Positions 18,906 through 25,834 of a DNA stretch of 64,000 nucleotides are shown in pieces (the stretch's first letter is position 1; the number at the start of each line of letters is the position of its first letter). The notes below the pieces were generated by a model. The model did not search any database. It was given only the letters and a program-made list of their open reading frames with translations, and had not been told where the DNA came from. A program made the position numbers and the translations under genes. The stretch spans positions 1 through 64,000 of IMG/VR virus record IMGVR_UViG_3300050821_002957; one strand, given 5' to 3'.

Positions 18906-18933
18906 AAGTGACCAGGGCTACCGAAAACTTCTT

Positions 18934-19227
18934 CTATGAACCTGTGTGCGACGACGTGTGGGTGCCTGGGGTGGATTGAATCGCCGCTTCGACCAACGGC
19001 TGATTGGCTTCACACCACTCGACGTACTGACTCAGATCGTGAATGAACTGCGAAAGATTGAACGTGCTGTTGTGATGCAGCTTCTCCTTCACAGTCTCGA
19101 TCTTGATGTTAGTACTGGACTGCTGTTTTGGATTCGCCTCCAGAGATGTCTCAAGCGTGGTTGCGACGGCTTGAATCCTTCGGGCATCCTTAGAGTACTC
19201 GGCAGGTGACTGCTGTTCTTGTTTCAT
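18934..19227 (-). CDS. Hypothetical protein
   Basis: 97 aa; preferred over antisense ORF 18946..19209. Confidence 0.5.
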   Translation of the reverse strand: MKQEQQSPAEYSKDARRIQAVATTLETSLEANPKQQSSTNIKIETVKEKLHHNSTFNLSQFIHDLSQYVEWCEANQPLVEAAIQSTPGTHTSSHTGS

Positions 19228-19293: not shown

Positions 19294-20364
19294 TTATACC
19301 CAACGCTCGATATAAATTGCATTTCGGCGTAATTCGGCTATTTGATCCGGTTTCAAAATGTAAGTTGAGCCACTGGTTTCATCTTTTTTCATTTTGTATC
19401 CACGACTGAACAGCGTCGAAGTGCTCAAGAAAATTTCAATATTACGGACTCCCGGCTCATAATAAGGTCTCCATTTATCTCTGAGCTTCACCATCTTGGT
19501 CATATCTCTGGCGATGGTAGGCACCAGAAACACGGCATAGATTGTATTGCGCTGAAGATTCGTCTGAAGTACGACAAGAGCCTGCTTGGTCGGGAGCTTA
19601 TTCATAGCTTCTTCGTCAGAGACACTATTTGGTAGGATCTTTCTAATAACTTGTCCCCGGCGCATGATGTCTTCTTCTTCTGATGGTGACAGGGGATGCC
19701 AAGTAACCTGTCGAACTGTTTTTGATAGACCGTATTTGATCGCTAGGTTGGTTTCAATTTTGATTACTAGCATTTCTTGACCGGGCTTTAGACGATCTTC
19801 AGAACCCCAAAATGCTACTAGTTCGTCCATCTTTTTGGGTGTGTCGAATGCGGTTCCCGAGTAATAGTTCGCATACCATCCATCTCGACCAGTGAAGCCA
19901 GATTGACCTTTGTGATTGTACATGACGACAGTGGTCATCTTCTTTTCATCGTTAGTCAATTCGAGATCGTTAATGGTGTCACCAAGTGGAATTTGGAATC
20001 CGACAATACTCGAACAACGATGCGCCTGAGACTGAAATCTCCAACCATGTCTTCCATCTCCGTCGCCAGTGGTCACAGCAAGAAATGCATGAACCAATTC
20101 GTGGATGACAAGTGCGTCTAGTCCTTGTTCAGTACGTTTAAACTTGGTATTCATTACGATTCGCAAAGAGCCAGGAAGTATTGTTCGACCATTTGTGCTA
20201 TAATATGTCGTTCCGCCAGCAGATTTTAGTTCGCCCCAGGTAATTGGACATCTTGGGATGCGACCATCGAACAACAGACGATTGTACGTGTCGAATTTGT
20301 GCTCTAGGCTATAGTCACCTTCGATCACAGGAGATTCAGCCAGCCATTGTTGGAATTTTAGCAT
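19294..20364 (-). CDS. SprT-like zinc metalloprotease domain protein
   Basis: FDTYNRLLFDG, AGG, LVIHELVHAFL, HGWRFQSQA; N-terminus MLKFQQWLAE. Confidence 0.85.
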   Translation of the reverse strand: MLKFQQWLAESPVIEGDYSLEHKFDTYNRLLFDGRIPRCPITWGELKSAGGTTYYSTNGRTILPGSLRIVMNTKFKRTEQGLDALVIHELVHAFLAVTTGDGDGRHGWRFQSQAHRCSSIVGFQIPLGDTINDLELTNDEKKMTTVVMYNHKGQSGFTGRDGWYANYYSGTAFDTPKKMDELVAFWGSEDRLKPGQEMLVIKIETNLAIKYGLSKTVRQVTWHPLSPSEEEDIMRRGQVIRKILPNSVSDEEAMNKLPTKQALVVLQTNLQRNTIYAVFLVPTIARDMTKMVKLRDKWRPYYEPGVRNIEIFLSTSTLFSRGYKMKKDETSGSTYILKPDQIAELRRNAIYIERWV

Positions 20365-20831
20365 TATAAAACTCGAATTTGTTCAATAAAACTTTGAATT
20401 TGCTCTTTGCTCGACTCAGTATTTCTAAGCAAATCTAGCAAATATTTTATCTGTGCTTTACCTTCACTGATGTCGATGATGATCCCGTACATGATGTGGG
20501 TTCCAGGATACACTCGACCAGTCGCCCGGACCCACATCACCTTGTCTGAACCAATCGGTGTGACTCGATATTCGGCGACATACTCGGTGACTTCTCCGGT
20601 TAAAATTTTGTCGATACGCTTGCGAATAATTACTACATCACCTGAGTCAACTTGATCAAGATAACGATCCAATGTGATTTCTTCTACGTCGTTGTAGCCC
20701 ATTAAATGCCGTAAGACACTGTTCCAACGAGTTTCATTCTTGTCGATATCAAATGCGAACGTACCAATTTTTGAACTCTCACATGCCATCAACAATTGGT
20801 CAGCGGTCATTTGTTCGATAAGTTTAGGCAT
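20364..20831 (-). CDS. Stand-alone PAS (PAS_3/PAC) domain protein
   Basis: IGTFAFDI....RWN..LRHLMGY...YVAEYRV.....MWVRATGRV....MYGIIIDIS; start after late promoter. Confidence 0.8.
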   Translation of the reverse strand: MPKLIEQMTADQLLMACESSKIGTFAFDIDKNETRWNSVLRHLMGYNDVEEITLDRYLDQVDSGDVVIIRKRIDKILTGEVTEYVAEYRVTPIGSDKVMWVRATGRVYPGTHIMYGIIIDISEGKAQIKYLLDLLRNTESSKEQIQSFIEQIRVL

Positions 20832-20836
20832 AGAGG

Positions 20837-20843
20837 TATTTAG
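20837..20843 (-). promoter_or_regulatory. Late promoter CTAAATA
   Basis: 5 nt before PAS ATG, just after g23 terminator. Confidence 0.75.
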
Positions 20844-20858
20844 AGTTAGCACCAAATG

Positions 20859-20890
20859 AAAAAGCCCACCAAGATTTCTCTCAGTGGGCC
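20859..20890 (-). terminator. Rho-independent terminator after major capsid gene
   Basis: GGCCCACTGAGA-GAAA-TCTTGGTGGGCT-TTTT on minus strand. Confidence 0.8.
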
Positions 20891-20920
20891 TTAATGCTGA
20901 TCTCGAAAAGCAATTCCAGG

Positions 20921-22234
20921 TTACTGGAGGTTTGCAATCTTGACGAGGCGGTAGTACGGGTTGCTGGTTGCGGTGATTGCACCAGTGCTGTTTGTGTAGT
21001 AAGGATTTGCTACCAAGCCATAACGGGTTTTGAAACCAATCTTCGGCTGGAACGAATTCTCACCAACTGCACGGACCATCTGCAACGGAATGTATGGGCA
21101 GTAGAAGAAACCTGCGTCATACGGCGAGCTACCCTTGTAACCGACCATCATAAGTTCGGTATTCAAGTCGCCAGTGTTGTTGAAGTACGGATCGATGAAG
21201 ACCTTTGTGTTGTTCTTGAGAACGCCAGCGAAAGTGTTTCCTGTGTCATCGACATTGAGGTTCGTTGCGAGAGCAGGTGCATAGCTCAAAATACCTGTCA
21301 TTGCGAGTGCCGAAGCTACGTCGCTGGAGCAGATAATGAAGTTACCCTTGCCTCTACGAGTCTCACGAGCGATCTGGTTAGCATCACGCTCGACTTGGAA
21401 CAACATACCCTTGAACTTTTCTTCCAACCAACGGCCATTGGAATCTGTGTCAAGATCAAACGTGCCAGGGGTCGTTACCGACTTCTGAGCACCCGGCTTT
21501 GCGATGTAATACAGAGTACGGATGATCTCACGATTGATTTCTGCAAGGATTTCAGTCGAGAGGATGTTTGCCAACTCTGTTTCAGCATCCAAGCCATGAA
21601 TTGCCTTCAAGTCTTGTGCCAATTCCATCGTGTATTCTGCTTTCAATGCACGGCTGTTGGCAGTGACCGTAACTTTGTCAATGCTCAATGCCATTTCATT
21701 GAATGCGAAACCGACGCCATCACCCAAGGCTTCTGCCTGACCTGTGGTCATTGCAATACCTGTGGTGTATGGAGACAAGAACGGATCGCTGCCCTGCGCC
21801 TGAACGTATCCAGACATACCGGACTGACGACCTGCAAAGTCTGTGTCAGCTTCGTTGAAGAATGCTTCGTTGTTTGCTACGCCGTTTGTGATCGAAGAAG
21901 AACTCATCGTGCTGTACTTCGAGCGCATTGCGAAGATCAATCCCGTAGGACCAGTCATCGGCTGTACGCCACAAACGTCATATGCAATCAAGTTAGGCAT
22001 TGCACGACGAACGAGACTGATCAAAATCGGGTCCCATGCGCCAACGTTGCCAGAACTGATGTTGTTGGTCGGTGCCGCTTCCATCAATTGCTGCTTTTCT
22101 TCTTTGATTGCTCTCTGCTGGTTCTCAAGAATCTGGATAGTCACATCACGACGGTGACTGTCAGCAATCTTGGGAAGAGCTTCATGGTCGATAACTACTG
22201 ACCATTTCTGTCTTAGGTTTTCGGAAATATTCAT
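20921..22234 (-). CDS. g23: Major capsid protein (T4 gp23 family)
   Basis: DPILISLVRRAMPNLIAYDVCGVQPMTGPTGLIFAMR, RALKAEYTMELAQDLKAIHGLDAE, FQPKIGFKTRYG; start at MNISEN with GGAG SD. Confidence 0.98.
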   Translation of the reverse strand: MNISENLRQKWSVVIDHEALPKIADSHRRDVTIQILENQQRAIKEEKQQLMEAAPTNNISSGNVGAWDPILISLVRRAMPNLIAYDVCGVQPMTGPTGLIFAMRSKYSTMSSSSITNGVANNEAFFNEADTDFAGRQSGMSGYVQAQGSDPFLSPYTTGIAMTTGQAEALGDGVGFAFNEMALSIDKVTVTANSRALKAEYTMELAQDLKAIHGLDAETELANILSTEILAEINREIIRTLYYIAKPGAQKSVTTPGTFDLDTDSNGRWLEEKFKGMLFQVERDANQIARETRRGKGNFIICSSDVASALAMTGILSYAPALATNLNVDDTGNTFAGVLKNNTKVFIDPYFNNTGDLNTELMMVGYKGSSPYDAGFFYCPYIPLQMVRAVGENSFQPKIGFKTRYGLVANPYYTNSTGAITATSNPYYRLVKIANLQ

Positions 22235-22275
22235 ATACCGTCTCTCTCCAGTTTCTCTTTGAAACTTGCTGTATC

Positions 22276-22282
22276 TATTTAG
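22276..22282 (-). promoter_or_regulatory. Late promoter CTAAATA
   Basis: Upstream of g23. Confidence 0.75.
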
Positions 22283-22283
22283 A

Positions 22284-22309
22284 AGCCGCCGTATTTTCAC
22301 ACGGCGGCT
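22284..22309. other. 9 bp hairpin between g22 and g23
   Basis: AGCCGCCGT/ACGGCGGCT. Confidence 0.55.
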
Positions 22310-22321
22310 ATCTTGTACTTG

Positions 22322-23836
22322 TTAGTCCTTCTTACCCATTTTTGAGATGGTCTTTGTATACACATCCATCTCACCGGATACTGGTGCATTGGTCTTTGCT
22401 GATTCCATCAAAGGTTGCTCTTCTTCTTTCTTAGGAGCGCCCTTCTTTGGGAAATAGCTTTCTTTGAGAGTGTTGAGCTTCTCGGCAAATTCCTTGCGAG
22501 TGGTGTACTCGACGCCTTCTGCCAACTTCTTCAACTTCTCACGCTGCGTATCTGCCAAGCCGCTGGATACTGCACGGACAACTTCTTCCTTGCGGTATGC
22601 ATTCAAACTTGCACGCATCTTTACGTTCGATTCGACCGACTCATTGAGCTTTGCTTCAAGAGTGCTGACCTTCTTTCCGAGGGTTGCAAGAACATCAACT
22701 TTGGACTCAGGAACTTCGATGTAGTGTTCGACAAAGAGGTTCTTCAAGCCCTTGATAAAGTCTTCTGCAAGTTCGGCACGAATGCCACGCTCGACAGCCA
22801 AACGATTTTCCTTCATCCAGTTCTCGACGACGTAATTGAGGTAGTTGTCAACCTGTCCAGTCAACTTCTGCTCTGTGATTGCCAGCTTCTTTTCAGAACG
22901 TGCCTTCAATACAGCAAATGCTTCCTTCAACTTCTTCGTTGCGACCTTCTGGACACGCTGCTTCTCTTCGTTCACACGGCGAGTTACAGCAGCCTTGTAG
23001 ATCGTGGTTGCCTTGGTCTTTGCAGCTTCGGACAACTTGGTGCCTGCGAAAATTGCGTTAATGTCTTCGGCGACCGATTTCTTGTCGTCGTTCTGATCAG
23101 CAGTACCAACCGAAGAGTCAGCCGAAAATTTCTGGTTCGGTGTCTTTGCGCCAACTGCTGGTCGGGTCAACTTGTCAGGGGTGTCAAGCATCGAGTCAAC
23201 ATCAGGAAGAGTCTCATCCGGCGTACCGAAATCATCGTCCGAATCCTTCAAGCTGGTCTCGCCTTCTTCTTCCTCAGCGACCTTAATTCCAGGTGCCTTG
23301 CTGACGAGCTTGTCCGGGGACTCCAACTTTGAATCGACATCAGGAAGAGTTTCATCGGGAGTACCGAAGTCATCATCCTTGTCCTTCAAACTTGTTTCGC
23401 CTTCTTCCTCTTCACCAAGACCGTCTTTGTGAGAATCAGGACCGTTGTCGCCTTCCTCTTCCCCGGCTGCGTCTTCGTCTTCACCTTCAGCTAACTTTGC
23501 AAGAAGAGATGCAAAGGTTTCGTCAAGGTCATCCTTCTCGTCCTTGTCGTCTTCCTTGTCCTTGCCATCGCCGTCTTCTTCGTCTTCGCTCATGCCATCA
23601 AGACCGAAACCCTTGGTGATCGGCTCATCTTTTGCTGCATCATCGACACCGATTTCGCCGACGCCTGGAACCGGCCATGCCTGCGGTACGTGTGCTTTCT
23701 GTACATTCTTTGCGTAGTCCAGAGGGCCTTTCAGCGTAGCGCTGGGTGAAGGACCGCCCACGATTTCATAGGCCACTTCCTCATTCAAGTCAGACTTGTT
23801 GAGGATGTCCAAAATTTTGTCTTCAATTCTTCCCAT
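22322..23836 (-). CDS. g22: Prohead core scaffold protein (T4 gp22 family) with long acidic N-terminal extension
   Basis: LSEAAKTKATTIYKAAV, VDNYLNYVVENWMKENRLAVERGIRAELAEDFIKGLKNLFVEHYIEVPE; position between g21 and g23. Confidence 0.93.
   Translation of the reverse strand: MGRIEDKILDILNKSDLNEEVAYEIVGGPSPSATLKGPLDYAKNVQKAHVPQAWPVPGVGEIGVDDAAKDEPITKGFGLDGMSEDEEDGDGKDKEDDKDEKDDLDETFASLLAKLAEGEDEDAAGEEEGDNGPDSHKDGLGEEEEGETSLKDKDDDFGTPDETLPDVDSKLESPDKLVSKAPGIKVAEEEEGETSLKDSDDDFGTPDETLPDVDSMLDTPDKLTRPAVGAKTPNQKFSADSSVGTADQNDDKKSVAEDINAIFAGTKLSEAAKTKATTIYKAAVTRRVNEEKQRVQKVATKKLKEAFAVLKARSEKKLAITEQKLTGQVDNYLNYVVENWMKENRLAVERGIRAELAEDFIKGLKNLFVEHYIEVPESKVDVLATLGKKVSTLEAKLNESVESNVKMRASLNAYRKEEVVRAVSSGLADTQREKLKKLAEGVEYTTRKEFAEKLNTLKESYFPKKGAPKKEEEQPLMESAKTNAPVSGEMDVYTKTISKMGKKD
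23168..23413 (-). repeat. 46 aa tandem duplication within gp22
   Basis: EEEEGETSLKDxDDDFGTPDETLPDVDSxLxxPDKL twice. Confidence 0.85.
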
Positions 23837-23881: not shown

Positions 23882-23942
23882 AAGCAAATTGATTTTGGTG
23901 GTGTAGATCGAAGTGATGGATATCGTCTATATAGTGGTACGA

Positions 23943-24509
23943 ATGATGACACTCGAAACACTTGAATCGGAATGGCATGAAGGAAACGAAAAAGCATTCT
24001 CTGCCTATGGAAGAACCAGTCACATCAAAGCTCTATGGCGCTGCTCTAAATGCGGTCATGAGTGGCAAGCTACAAAAAGTAATCGAGTAAGCAAGGGTAG
24101 TGGATGTCCTAAGTGTAGAAAACAAAATTTCAAAGGTTCCAGCAATCCAAAATGGACAGGTTACGGTGAAATCAGTGGAAAGCAATGGTCAGGAATTCGA
24201 CGTAATTCTATTCAACCATTTGAAATTACTATCGAATATGCCTGGGAACTGTTTCTCATACAAAACAGAAAATGTGTTTTCACTGGTAGGGAATTAACAG
24301 TAAGCACAGCATCACTAGACTGCATAGACCTATCTAAAGGCTATGTCGAAGGTAATGTCCGATGGATCGATAAAAGATTGAATAACATCCTACCAGACGA
24401 AACCTTTATTGCGTTATGTCAAGAAGTAGCTGCCTACCAGACCAAGAAAGAGTTGGAAGAGCGAGGCATTCCTTCGTTTACAGAATGGAAATCGAAAGGT
24501 TCTTCATGA
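23943..24509 (+). CDS. Zn-ribbon (DUF4379-like) plus HNH-like endonuclease, antisense between g21 and g22
   Basis: WRCSKCGHEWQA..SNR...GSGCPKC; SLDCIDLSKGYVEGNVRWI. Confidence 0.75.
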   Translation: MMTLETLESEWHEGNEKAFSAYGRTSHIKALWRCSKCGHEWQATKSNRVSKGSGCPKCRKQNFKGSSNPKWTGYGEISGKQWSGIRRNSIQPFEITIEYAWELFLIQNRKCVFTGRELTVSTASLDCIDLSKGYVEGNVRWIDKRLNNILPDETFIALCQEVAAYQTKKELEERGIPSFTEWKSKGSS

Positions 24510-25170
24510 AAGCATCAAACGACTCCATCATCTCTCTTTCGGATGGAGCTTTCTTTTTGAACTGCTTCTGAATGGTTGCAACCTGAGCTTCGACTTTGGT
24601 GTTCTTCTGGATCTTTGCTTCGGTCAAAATGCCGCCGCTCCAGACCCACTCTTTGCCTTCCATGATTCCTTGGACAAATGCTGAGGGCGCACTAGGATCA
24701 GCTACAATGTCAGCAGCGGTCGCAAGATAGAAATCGTCCTGGACTTCTTGGATGCCAGAATCGTTTTGTTTCAGGCTCCCCATGCCACGGCTAGAGACAC
24801 CTAATTTGACGCCAGCATCCATTAAGTTCTGGACGATTTTGCCATTTGGTGTATTGAGAATTTTTGCCTTGCCGATGAAGTTGTTGCCGTCACGATAAAG
24901 TTCGGTAATCAAGTGGCTGACCTTATCGAGATTTAAAGTCGGCCCGTCAGGATGTCCCAATTCTCCGAGAGCACGATTCTGAGATACGTAGGCTTGATGA
25001 TAACGGGAAACTTCACGCTCTAAAATATCGATTGGATAAACACGACCATTACGATTTTGAAGATTGGCTTGAAGGAAGACACCTTGGATGTGATATGACT
25101 TATTAGGTCCGTTGCCTTCGGTGACTGCTTCGACAATGATGTTTTCGTTCTGCTCACAAATTAGCTTCAT
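24478..25170 (-). CDS. g21: Prohead core protease (T4 gp21 family)
   Basis: IQGVFLQAN..NRNGRVYP, RALGELGHP, GVKLGVSSRGMGSL, ADIVADPSAP.AFV.GIME. Confidence 0.97.
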   Translation of the reverse strand: MKLICEQNENIIVEAVTEGNGPNKSYHIQGVFLQANLQNRNGRVYPIDILEREVSRYHQAYVSQNRALGELGHPDGPTLNLDKVSHLITELYRDGNNFIGKAKILNTPNGKIVQNLMDAGVKLGVSSRGMGSLKQNDSGIQEVQDDFYLATAADIVADPSAPSAFVQGIMEGKEWVWSGGILTEAKIQKNTKVEAQVATIQKQFKKKAPSEREMMESFDAFMKNLSISIL

Positions 25171-25171
25171 A

Positions 25172-25834
25172 TTATCCTCTCTTCTTAGCTGCTGGTGGGT
25201 GTCCAATGAAATTATCTACGACATGCTTTGCGATCATGTGCATGAATGGATTCTTTCCTGCAAACTTCTTAATCGACGTATGGATTGCTTTGTACCGTGC
25301 TCTCTGCTTCTTGTCGATCTTTTTCTTGGCGGTATTTTCTGCGCCACGTTTCGATTTCAATACTGCGGTGCCTGCGGCCAATTCGTTTGAGATGGCTTTC
25401 AACTCAGGCGTCTTTTTGTCGCTTGCTGCTTTGCTCCACCGTTCCCGAGTGCTCTTCAGCATGGTTTCGATGTGAGATGCAGCCATTCCGTCAAAGTATT
25501 GTTGGAACTGTGCTCTGGAAGGAACTACAGGTTTACCATTGATGTCTTTTTCGACTCTTGGCTTGGGATCGGACTCAGCCAAAATTTGAAGGTCTCCCCA
25601 AAAATTTGCTGATTCTTGTAGACGAATGGATTCGATCATGTCGGCTGCTTTGGCATAGAGCACAGCCTCCAATCCTTCATCTACACGATTTGCTGCACCA
25701 TTGGCCTGTCTAATTGCAGAGGCATCGTCGCCGGTTTTAGACAGCACACTATTAGCTACCGCCACCCATACTTTCTTTTGGTGGTCTGATAGTCCTTTGT
25801 GGTGTTTATCTACATCGGCAACGGTCCAAGGCAT
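25172..25834 (-). CDS. Prohead core-region protein with ChaB-like N-terminal domain
   Basis: MPWTVADV...LSDHQKKVWVAVANSVL..GDDASAIRQANGA. Confidence 0.65.
   Translation of the reverse strand: MPWTVADVDKHHKGLSDHQKKVWVAVANSVLSKTGDDASAIRQANGAANRVDEGLEAVLYAKAADMIESIRLQESANFWGDLQILAESDPKPRVEKDINGKPVVPSRAQFQQYFDGMAASHIETMLKSTRERWSKAASDKKTPELKAISNELAAGTAVLKSKRGAENTAKKKIDKKQRARYKAIHTSIKKFAGKNPFMHMIAKHVVDNFIGHPPAAKKRG

Follow-up and report, generated by a model that had tools for sequence, protein, structure and literature searches.

The stretch analysed here, called the window throughout, is the first 64 kb (64,000 nucleotides, nt) of the 405,631-bp IMG/VR virus record IMGVR_UViG_3300050821_002957. 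Two adjacent genes at 19294-20843 on its minus strand, at the 3′ end of a T4-type head module, code for a stand-alone PAS protein and an SprT-like zinc metalloprotease. The reading that we favour, and consider reasonably probable on what the sequences offer, is that of a fast-evolving cassette of head-packaged, injected enzymes, in which the SprT-like protein would be cargo tagged with a capsid targeting sequence (CTS) and the PAS protein an optional accessory. Since the SprT-like protein bears a head-loading tag of T4 type, it is probably an injected weapon. The genome that hosts the unit is a 405-kb soil T4-like jumbo phage, and all public runs containing the stretch, from five studies, were soil metagenomes or soil metatranscriptomes.

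Leaders of the protease and of unrelated enzymes

That T4 packages proteins by means of a CTS is established knowledge, and leaders resembling it have been described in T-even relatives. In T4, ten N-terminal residues of IPIII are enough to bring a protein into the prohead core; within the CTS, residues 4 and 7 serve targeting and residues 8 and 10 processing, gp21 cutting after L/I-x-E (PMC9026906). T-even internal proteins are diverse anti-defence proteins with only the CTS in common (PMC3012670). We observed that the SprT-like protein carries F4, W7, L8 and E10, then Ser11, and fits the T4 CTS at all four experimentally mapped positions (4, 7, 8 and 10). T4 IPII and IPIII start with MKTYQEFIAE, then Ala, and IPI with MKTFKEF. 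In the structural model of the SprT-like protein, residues 1-18 formed the least confident part, with a predicted local distance difference test score (pLDDT) below 50.

The SprT-like orthologues found on other contigs (designated by L numbers, single proteins by P numbers) start in a similar manner: the set of leaders reads MLKFQQWLAE, MLSFQQFIVE, MLSFLQFLTE, MLSFVAWLTE and MLTFDQWLTE. The form MLSFxQ(F/W/Y)(L/I)xE heads all SprT-like orthologues and also unrelated enzymes, namely an ART-PolyVal protein of L002 (MITFLNYITE) and three GNATs, one in L002 and two in L007 (MLSFIQYITE, MLSFVQFVTE and MLTFYQYLSE). It is absent from the PAS proteins, from the homing endonucleases and from P0008, a protein considered below.

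Of the 3444 candidate starts of the 405-kb genome, a relaxed leader pattern picked out only three: those of the SprT-like gene, of a 192-amino-acid methyltransferase-like gene and of a 303-amino-acid Acb1 gene, the latter two directly behind CTAAATA. The Acb1 protein, encoded outside the window (G000:C1:369676-370587 (+), equal to L013:1177-2088), matched PF23474, a phosphodiesterase directed against the cyclic-oligonucleotide-based antiphage signalling system (CBASS), with 78.6 bits; no family was assigned to the C-terminal 150 residues. It starts with MKTFAQFMTE, a near-copy of the T4 IPI/IPIII leader, 16 nt behind CTAAATA, which suggests that this anti-CBASS enzyme may be pre-packaged and injected. 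We also noted that T4 Acb1 (gene 57B, L014:1953-2411) starts with MMEFKDFSTG, similar to MKTFKEFTST of the adjacent ipI (L014:1592-1879). The methyltransferase-like gene is one of two overlapping leader-bearing genes at G000:C1:244266-245311 (-), equal to L012:767-1812. Its product starts with MMKSFTNWLLE and gave a weak match to Methyltransf_23, while the 155-amino-acid protein encoded beside it starts with MLLTFIQFINE and belongs to no known family. A homologue of this 155-amino-acid protein (E 1e-27) recurs as the second part of a 650-amino-acid fusion in L015, after the leader and an unknown module and ahead of an SprT-like module (E 1e-97). The joints of the fusion carry L/I-x-E leader relics, HLIE/S and YLDE/G (the slash marks the joint), and from these features we regard it as a polyvalent-protein-like precursor with built-in L/I-x-E sites.

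The leader was also searched in IMG/VR with a pattern made of TAAATA, a spacer of 3-30 nt and the back-translated leader. This gave at least 120 loci, 80 of which were fetched and are the basis of the following counts. They held 56 distinct leaders, and 57 of the 65 complete open reading frames (ORFs) were at least 100 amino acids long. Of the 80 loci, 40 had the T4 late promoter in full, TATAAATA, which is more than the pattern demanded. Among 64 distinct sequences, position 5 was Lys in 30 and position 11 Ala, Ser or Gly in 37, while synonymous codons of the leader varied freely. A control pattern with reversed codon order returned 31 matches, reducible to six distinct sequences, mostly from one sample and with no ORF of 60 amino acids or more. 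We regard the leader as a real protein signal. Its cargo is diverse: most of 50 distinct ORFs matched no family, and the families that were recognised include DUF6267 (7), S-adenosylmethionine lyase (2), Zeta toxin, a C39-like peptidase, a methyltransferase and a nucleotidyltransferase. The commonest listed cargo, the DUF6267 protein of about 377 amino acids (7/50 ORFs, best E 1e-111; L017, L028, L043, L053, L061 and others), is a candidate widespread internal head protein.

The leader pattern is that of T4 IPI, IPII and IPIII (and Alt), with aromatic residues at positions 4 and 7, I or L at 8, E at 10 and a small residue next. T4 and this phage both possess a gp21 (S77) protease and a gp22 scaffold, and in both the cargo is unrelated and varies between related phages; late expression, a trait of the T4 proteins, would also be common to both. 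In contrast, the T4 internal proteins are small, non-enzymatic or inhibitory and scattered in the genome, whereas here a 40-kDa zinc protease lies in a cassette behind gp23; also, the leader consensus is MLSFxQ(F/W/Y)(L/I)xE here and MKT(Y/F)xEF in T4, and the former is known from sequence alone.

The protease and the variable slot behind gp23

The preliminary description of the region had recognised a HExxH protein of the SprT family with a long uncharacterised C-terminal half, and this was borne out. The protein matched the Pfam family SprT-like (PF10263) over residues 21-120 with 43.3 bits against a cut-off of 25.6, and with 46.2 bits in a search of the whole genome. H88, E89, H92, H106 and a neighbouring GDGDG were unchanged in five homologues. 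A profile of the family matched human Spartan (6mdw) with E 3.3e-8, HELVH...H106 being aligned to HEMIH...GHG, and VIA-align of the structural model to 6mdx_A gave Z 12.4 with a root-mean-square deviation of 2.5 over 98 residues (26% identity). After Spartan, the best fold matches were minigluzincins and Wss1 (Z 7-9), and ArdC was weak (Z 5.6). The phage protein thus has in common with human Spartan (SPRTN) the fold of the protease subdomain, HExxH and the downstream HG zinc ligand. It differs in that the zinc- and single-stranded-DNA-binding subdomain is replaced by an unrelated basic alpha/beta region of 220 residues: the alignments to 6mdw and 6mdx end at residue 124-130, and the phage protein has only 2 Cys. 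The setting, a phage late gene beside the capsid gene, is also unlike that of Spartan.

Residues 140-356 belong to no Pfam family, and whole-model searches of PDB and BFVD found no solved structure for this region, the matches being to the protease domain or to viral SprT-like proteins. In the Atlas, residues 256-356 resembled viral proteins of 106 amino acids and a viral SprT-like cluster; language-model features gave no usable match.

Word search yielded four full-length relatives of the protease, to which are added a partial copy on L007 (42% identity over 249 amino acids) and the C-terminal module of the L015 fusion (40%). Distant homologues in cultured phages came only from Tenacibaculum phages, in a replication-gene context. 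A metagenome scan with the SprT-like profile recovered only a contig 100% identical to the query, hence not independent, and scans of IMG/VR with the single PAS and SprT-like proteins found nothing; PHROGs gave no useful match. Within the 405-kb genome we noticed a second SprT-like match, weak and under the cut-off (19.2 bits), in a 238-amino-acid open frame (L010, match at G000:C1:211025-211117 (+)).

Orthologues of the SprT-like gene were present on six other contigs, one of which (P0005, 1.4 kb) is without context, so that six contexts including the window could be compared, a small sample. In all six, the SprT-like gene lies downstream of gp23, and what stands between the two varies: a PAS gene in the window, nothing in L003, two GNAT genes and a PAS gene in L007, a GIY-YIG endonuclease, an ART-PolyVal and a GNAT gene in L002, a gene for a 357-amino-acid protein with a signal-peptide-like N-terminus in L004/L005, and an endonuclease in L015, where the SprT-like part is the last module of the 650-amino-acid fusion. 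Among these relatives, identity to the window copy was 87-98% for gp23 and 42-64% for the SprT-like protein. The slot between gp23 and the SprT-like gene is a hypervariable cargo cassette. The endonuclease genes (GIY-YIG/NUMOD3 homing endonucleases, L002:4257-4940 and L015:5222-6088, not in the window) are inserted directly after gp23 in two relatives, which fits a recombination-prone slot. The 357-amino-acid protein, P0008 (L005:2560-3633, L004:819-1892), begins with a twin-arginine or signal-peptide-like N-terminus, MNRRTLLGAAGLFIPAVASA, and has no Pfam match and no leader; such a product is unexpected within a phage head operon.

The repertoire recalls that of the polyvalent proteins (Iyer et al. 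2017; for example ArdC and P1 DdrB), which likewise comprise zincin, ART-PolyVal, GNAT, methyltransferase and phosphodiesterase domains, have virion genes as neighbours and are predicted to be delivered with DNA; as in these, modules are fused in L015. Unlike the polyvalent proteins, with several domains in a single giant polypeptide, the domains here are spread over separate genes that each have a CTS, and the SprT-like protein consists of one catalytic domain and one uncharacterised region. Also, the protease scores as SprT-like PF10263, and the term SprT has 0 occurrences in PMC5512222.

The PAS protein, the late-promoter-like motifs and the head module

The predicted PAS fold of the 155-amino-acid protein is firm. 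The protein scored 26.6 bits against TIGR00229 (sensory_box, cut-off 22.9) and 19 bits against Pfam PAS_3, under the cut-off of 25.6. Exhaustive HMMER search (phmmer) returned 2155 matches at E<=0.001 and 117 at E<=1e-10, almost all of them PAS repeats within sensors whose length ranges from several hundred residues to over 2000. The AlphaFold2 model, built on an alignment of 49 of these matches, reached pLDDT 94.8 and a predicted template modelling score of 0.80. It comprises an N-cap helix (2-19), five strands (22-28, 33-36, 83-90, 99-107 and 113-120) and a long C-terminal helix (122-154). Its best Foldseek match was 6ph4_B, PAS-B and linker helix of Brucella LOV-HK (template modelling score 0.79, E 1e-8), among 113 PDB matches at E<=0.001 in which FixL PAS domains and short LOV proteins came next.

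No kinase or other output domain (HisKA/HATPase, GGDEF, EAL or HTH) was found in the protein; models of FixL, a diguanylate cyclase and a MASE3 kinase matched it over their PAS segments only, and the predicted structure shows only the PAS core and helices. The preliminary description of a PAS protein lacking kinase and output domains therefore stood, in both profile and structure prediction, as did its remark that PAS sensors are foreign to the canonical T4 head module. Short stand-alone PAS/LOV proteins (e.g. PpSB1-LOV, short-LOV entries having Foldseek E about 1e-5 to the model) and the PAS repeats of sensor kinases (Brucella LOV-HK PAS-B, FixL) have the same N-cap helix, five-strand core and long C-terminal helix. 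Unlike the short PAS/LOV proteins, the phage protein is probably late-expressed, has only two known close homologues and is without identified flavin, heme or other cofactor signature, cofactor motifs not having been examined in detail. It is acidic, with an isoelectric point (pI) of 5.1, and has no capsid targeting leader, so that it most likely stays in the producing cell. Taken with the model, the protein appears to be a late-expressed, acidic stand-alone module, probably dimeric, with an N-cap and a J-alpha-like helix.

Close homologues of the PAS protein are limited to two among 1.8 billion representative proteins, the copy on L007 (45% identity) and P0010 (49%). The latter, the closest, lies on an unrelated AT-rich contig without an adjacent SprT-like gene, and the 688-amino-acid protein encoded beside the PAS homologue in L006 is without a relative in the 405-kb genome. 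As homologues P0010 and P0011 begin at Met8 of the PAS protein, its start could be the second ATG (20810), giving 148 amino acids. No other copy was found by tblastn against cultured phages, by word search (query only) or by a scan of IMG/VR with a three-sequence PAS profile, and we found nothing specific in the literature linking PAS domains to phages. A 159-amino-acid gene in the PAS slot of L002 was rejected as a PAS homologue, its BLASTP match being weak (E 0.002, 20% gaps) and its product GNAT-like.

The PAS gene accompanies the SprT-like gene in two of the six contexts (window and L007). The preliminary description had proposed a dedicated sensor-effector pair or a decoy of host two-component signalling, and had noted a TAATG overlap joining the two genes. 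The overlap was read as described. The ART-GNAT and GNAT-SprT junctions of L002 have the same overlap; since a TAATG or near-abutting junction is common in the cassette, it is no mark of a special PAS-SprT pair. Synteny supported the linkage in part, the PAS gene being present in the window and L007 and lacking in four of six contexts. Co-folding of the SprT-like and PAS proteins gave a score of 0.00 in a run without controls, which speaks neither for nor against binding. With PAS in two of six contexts, a generic junction and no answer from co-folding, the proposal of a dedicated pair or decoy is not supported, and a looser functional link may exist. The PAS gene is a rare, optional passenger of the cassette and no demonstrated sensor of the protease. 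In order of preference, it is possibly an independent late accessory gene that came into a recombinogenic slot by chance, possibly a modulator or chaperone of the neighbouring protease, and possibly a means of interference with host PAS signalling; its role may also lie in modulating some late-infection process.

Table 1. Features of the head-module end and of the PAS and SprT-like genes (window coordinates)
Feature	Position	Strand	Basis or remark
gp21-type prohead core serine protease	24481..25206	-	Pfam Peptidase_S77, 130 bits, E 1e-37
gp22-type scaffolding core protein	22325..23836	-	Pfam T4_CASP, 225.8 bits; CTAAATA at 23881-23875, 38 nt upstream
gp23 major capsid protein	20921..22234	-	tblastn, 61-63% identity to T4-like major capsid proteins
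Intrinsic-terminator-like hairpin after gp23	20861..20892	-	14-bp stem with 6 GC pairs, then T-run
CTAAATA late-promoter-like motif	20837..20843	-	5 nt upstream of PAS ATG (20831)
PAS gene, stand-alone	20364..20831	-	155 amino acids; TIGR00229, 26.6 bits
TAATG stop/start overlap, PAS to SprT-like	20362..20366	-	read off the sequence
SprT-like zinc metalloprotease gene	19294..20364	-	356 amino acids, pI 9.15; Pfam SprT-like, 43.3 bits
Predicted CTS, SprT-like codons 1-10 (MLKFQQWLAE)	20335..20364	-	T4 IPII/IPIII pattern; predicted gp21 cut after E10
Zincin (SprT/Spartan-type) protease domain, residues 21-130	19975..20304	-	profile match to 6mdw; VIA-align to 6mdx
HELVH active-site motif, H88-H92	20089..20103	-	invariant in five homologues
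Third zinc ligand H106	20047-20049	-	invariant in five homologues
Basic C-terminal alpha/beta region, residues 140-356	19297..19947	-	pI 9.56; pLDDT mostly 73-93

The head module ahead of the unit contains the expected partners of a T4-type leader (Table 1): the gp21-type protease is the enzyme expected to cut after L/I-x-E, and the predicted propeptide of gp23 ends at L-M-E/A, at the expected position. The best cultured relatives of gp23 are those of Pelagibacter, Methylophilales and Synechococcus T4-like phages; megablast of the region found no close DNA relative in cultured phages. A gene for a DUF4379 treble-clef zinc finger (23913-24509, +) lies between the gp21-type protease and gp22-type scaffold genes, as it does in L002. 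Beyond the SprT-like gene, the opposite strand carries genes, so the PAS and SprT-like pair ends the late block. Just downstream of the SprT-like gene, a putative 97-amino-acid ORF (18934-19227, -) and a putative 87-amino-acid ORF (18946-19209, +) overlap; neither has a family match, and a contig of an RNA library spans 18912-19210.

The terminator after gp23, followed by a CTAAATA promoter dedicated to the unit, had been part of the preliminary description, and both elements were found. CTAAATA occurs 19 times in the window against 4.4 expected, a number reached in 0 of 100 shuffles. Seventeen of the 19 copies are on the minus strand, each 5-49 nt ahead of the ATG of an ORF at least 140 amino acids long, and gp22 and gp23 are among the genes so preceded. 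CTAAATA is a real signal. At 8 of the 19 sites (3395, 8011, 20843, 28926, 31146, 41742, 45926 and 60050) the ATG comes only 5-9 nt past the motif, and at many of the IMG/VR leader loci the spacing is exactly 5 nt. T4 late transcription starts about 6 nt after the promoter motif; if transcription begins at such a distance here, genes with this spacing would have leaderless or nearly leaderless late mRNAs.

Two soil metatranscriptomes yielded contigs identical to the window. On gp23 these span 20901-22252 and 20924-22366; two shorter ones, 20455-20781 and 20613-20787, fall on the PAS gene, and three pieces of 151 nt on the SprT-like gene. The contigs are interrupted at the terminator/promoter gap after gp23.

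Proposed pathway, alternative explanations and implications

From the gene anatomy, folds, shared leader, synteny and gp21/gp22 machinery observed in this analysis, we infer packaging, cleavage, ejection and a target of the protease. The SprT-like gene would be transcribed late, from CTAAATA; during prohead assembly its leader would dock the protein onto the gp22 scaffolding core, and the gp21-type (S77) protease would cut the leader off after L8-A-E10. The mature, basic protein of 39.6 kDa would remain with the DNA inside the head and be ejected with the genome into the next host. There, the Spartan-like HExxH...H zinc protease domain would cleave a host protein, and the 220-residue C-terminal region would guide it to its target, for which a defence protein or one bound to DNA is the most plausible candidate. 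All steps past transcription belong to the inferred part of this pathway. The divergence of the SprT-like protein relative to gp23, the swapping of ART and GNAT neighbours and the leader on Acb1 fit an arms-race function. Zincin peptidases, ARTs and GNATs are typical domains of injected polyvalent proteins (PMC5512222), and a published prediction has the SprT-like peptidases of jumbo phages cutting proteins of the host (PMC7824862).

Several points weigh against this pathway. Packaging and cleavage rest on ten residues and their context, the leader is unlike that of T4 at positions 2, 5, 6 and 9, and CTS function was demonstrated only in T-even phages, while gp23 reaches only some 60% identity with the nearest T4-like relatives in culture. 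We found no literature linking the CTS to cyanophages or to metagenomic or non-enterobacterial T4-like phages, which is weak evidence of absence. Concerning expression, the SprT-like gene lacks its own promoter motif and relies on transcription continuing through the PAS gene; the contigs of the RNA libraries, in which DNA carry-over is possible, show presence only and give neither starts, ends, strand nor timing. For residues 140-356, neither Pfam nor Atlas nor fold searches gave a functional clue. Lastly, the PAS proteins of window and L007 are 45% identical and the SprT-like proteins 42%, similar values that fit co-inheritance and leave a functional link possible.

Such a link is the core of the alternative in which the PAS protein senses a ligand or redox state and controls the SprT-like protease as its dedicated partner, or else acts as a decoy that disturbs PAS-based two-component signalling of the host. 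In its favour, the two neighbouring genes show translational coupling in the window, they are again side by side in L007 (45% / 42% identity), the N-cap, core and J-alpha-like helix resemble those of signalling-competent short PAS/LOV proteins, and the nearest relatives are PAS repeats of bacterial sensor proteins. We nevertheless consider this alternative unlikely, in view of the contexts without a PAS gene (4/6), the best PAS homologue standing apart from any SprT-like gene, the generic TAATG junction and the lack of an identified cofactor motif; moreover, the PAS protein does not have the leader of the protease, so the two would part at assembly. The leader on the SprT-like protein, common to unrelated neighbouring enzymes, points to a different and better-supported role than that of an effector under PAS control. 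Its conserved positions could in principle be a by-product of the translation-initiation region of leaderless late mRNAs, or of recombination at gene starts, with no targeting function. The many promoter motifs 5-9 nt before the ATG, whose first codons may be constrained as RNA, and the varying content of a recombinogenic cassette agree with that idea, which we judge very improbable all the same: the residues are kept while synonymous codons vary freely, and they coincide with the positions mapped experimentally in T4. The leader also occurs on promoter-distal genes (SprT-like gene of the window, GNAT and SprT-like genes of L002) and as an internal relic in a fusion, whereas late genes equally close to their promoter, the PAS gene for one, are without it.

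Two further alternatives concern the substrate of the protease. It may be a Spartan-like protease of DNA-protein-crosslink repair or of replication, acting on phage DNA in the infected cell and not packaged. Human Spartan is indeed its closest solved structure, the protein is basic (C-terminal half, pI 9.56) and the SprT homologues of Tenacibaculum phage PTm1 sit among replication and repair genes. In every relative, however, the gene closes the head operon, apparently under late-promoter control; together with the CTS-like leader and the absence of the Cys-rich zinc-binding subdomain of Spartan, this makes such a role improbable, and divergence far faster than that of gp23 is unusual for a housekeeping repair enzyme. 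Alternatively, the zincin may process co-packaged cargo (polyvalent precursors or neighbouring effectors) in the head or just after ejection, as proposed for the zincin domains of polyvalent proteins by Iyer et al. (PMC5512222) and in keeping with its place as C-terminal module of the three-module fusion of L015. We attach little probability to this one as well, because the SprT-like protein stands alone in the window, L003 and L005, without a fused or CTS-tagged neighbour, and the L015 joints carry L/I-x-E motifs that a gp21-type protease could cut unaided.

Returning to the cassette of injected enzymes, a bolder form of it, to which we give a slim chance, would combine two ideas. The PAS protein would be a cytoplasmic sensor of a small molecule or of redox state that gates the activity or the head-loading of the injected protease, tuning preloading to the state of the producing cell, and the decapeptide MLSFxQ(F/Y)(L/I)xE would be a readable code for the injected anti-defence arsenal (SprT-like, Acb1, ART, GNAT, S-adenosylmethionine lyase) of T4-like phages.

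Several points appear to be new: an SprT/Spartan-type protease and an Acb1 homologue both bear a predicted CTS, soil jumbo T4-like phages have a cargo cassette at a fixed place behind gp23, a rare stand-alone PAS gene rides in it, and the leader is widespread in metagenomic phages. Should the leader function as it does in T4, this soil jumbo phage preloads a Spartan-like protease and fires it into the next host with its DNA. If that is true, the Acb1 anti-CBASS enzyme would be delivered likewise, and counter-defence would start ahead of phage gene expression. The IMG/VR loci, at least 120 in number, at which a T4-type late promoter and the leader precede diverse cargo suggest that the T4 CTS is conserved far past the T-even phages. 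It could then become possible to read from sequence which proteins uncultured T4-like phages inject, and to pick candidate anti-defence enzymes among them for testing. The leader tag could also serve to bring foreign proteins into other phages.

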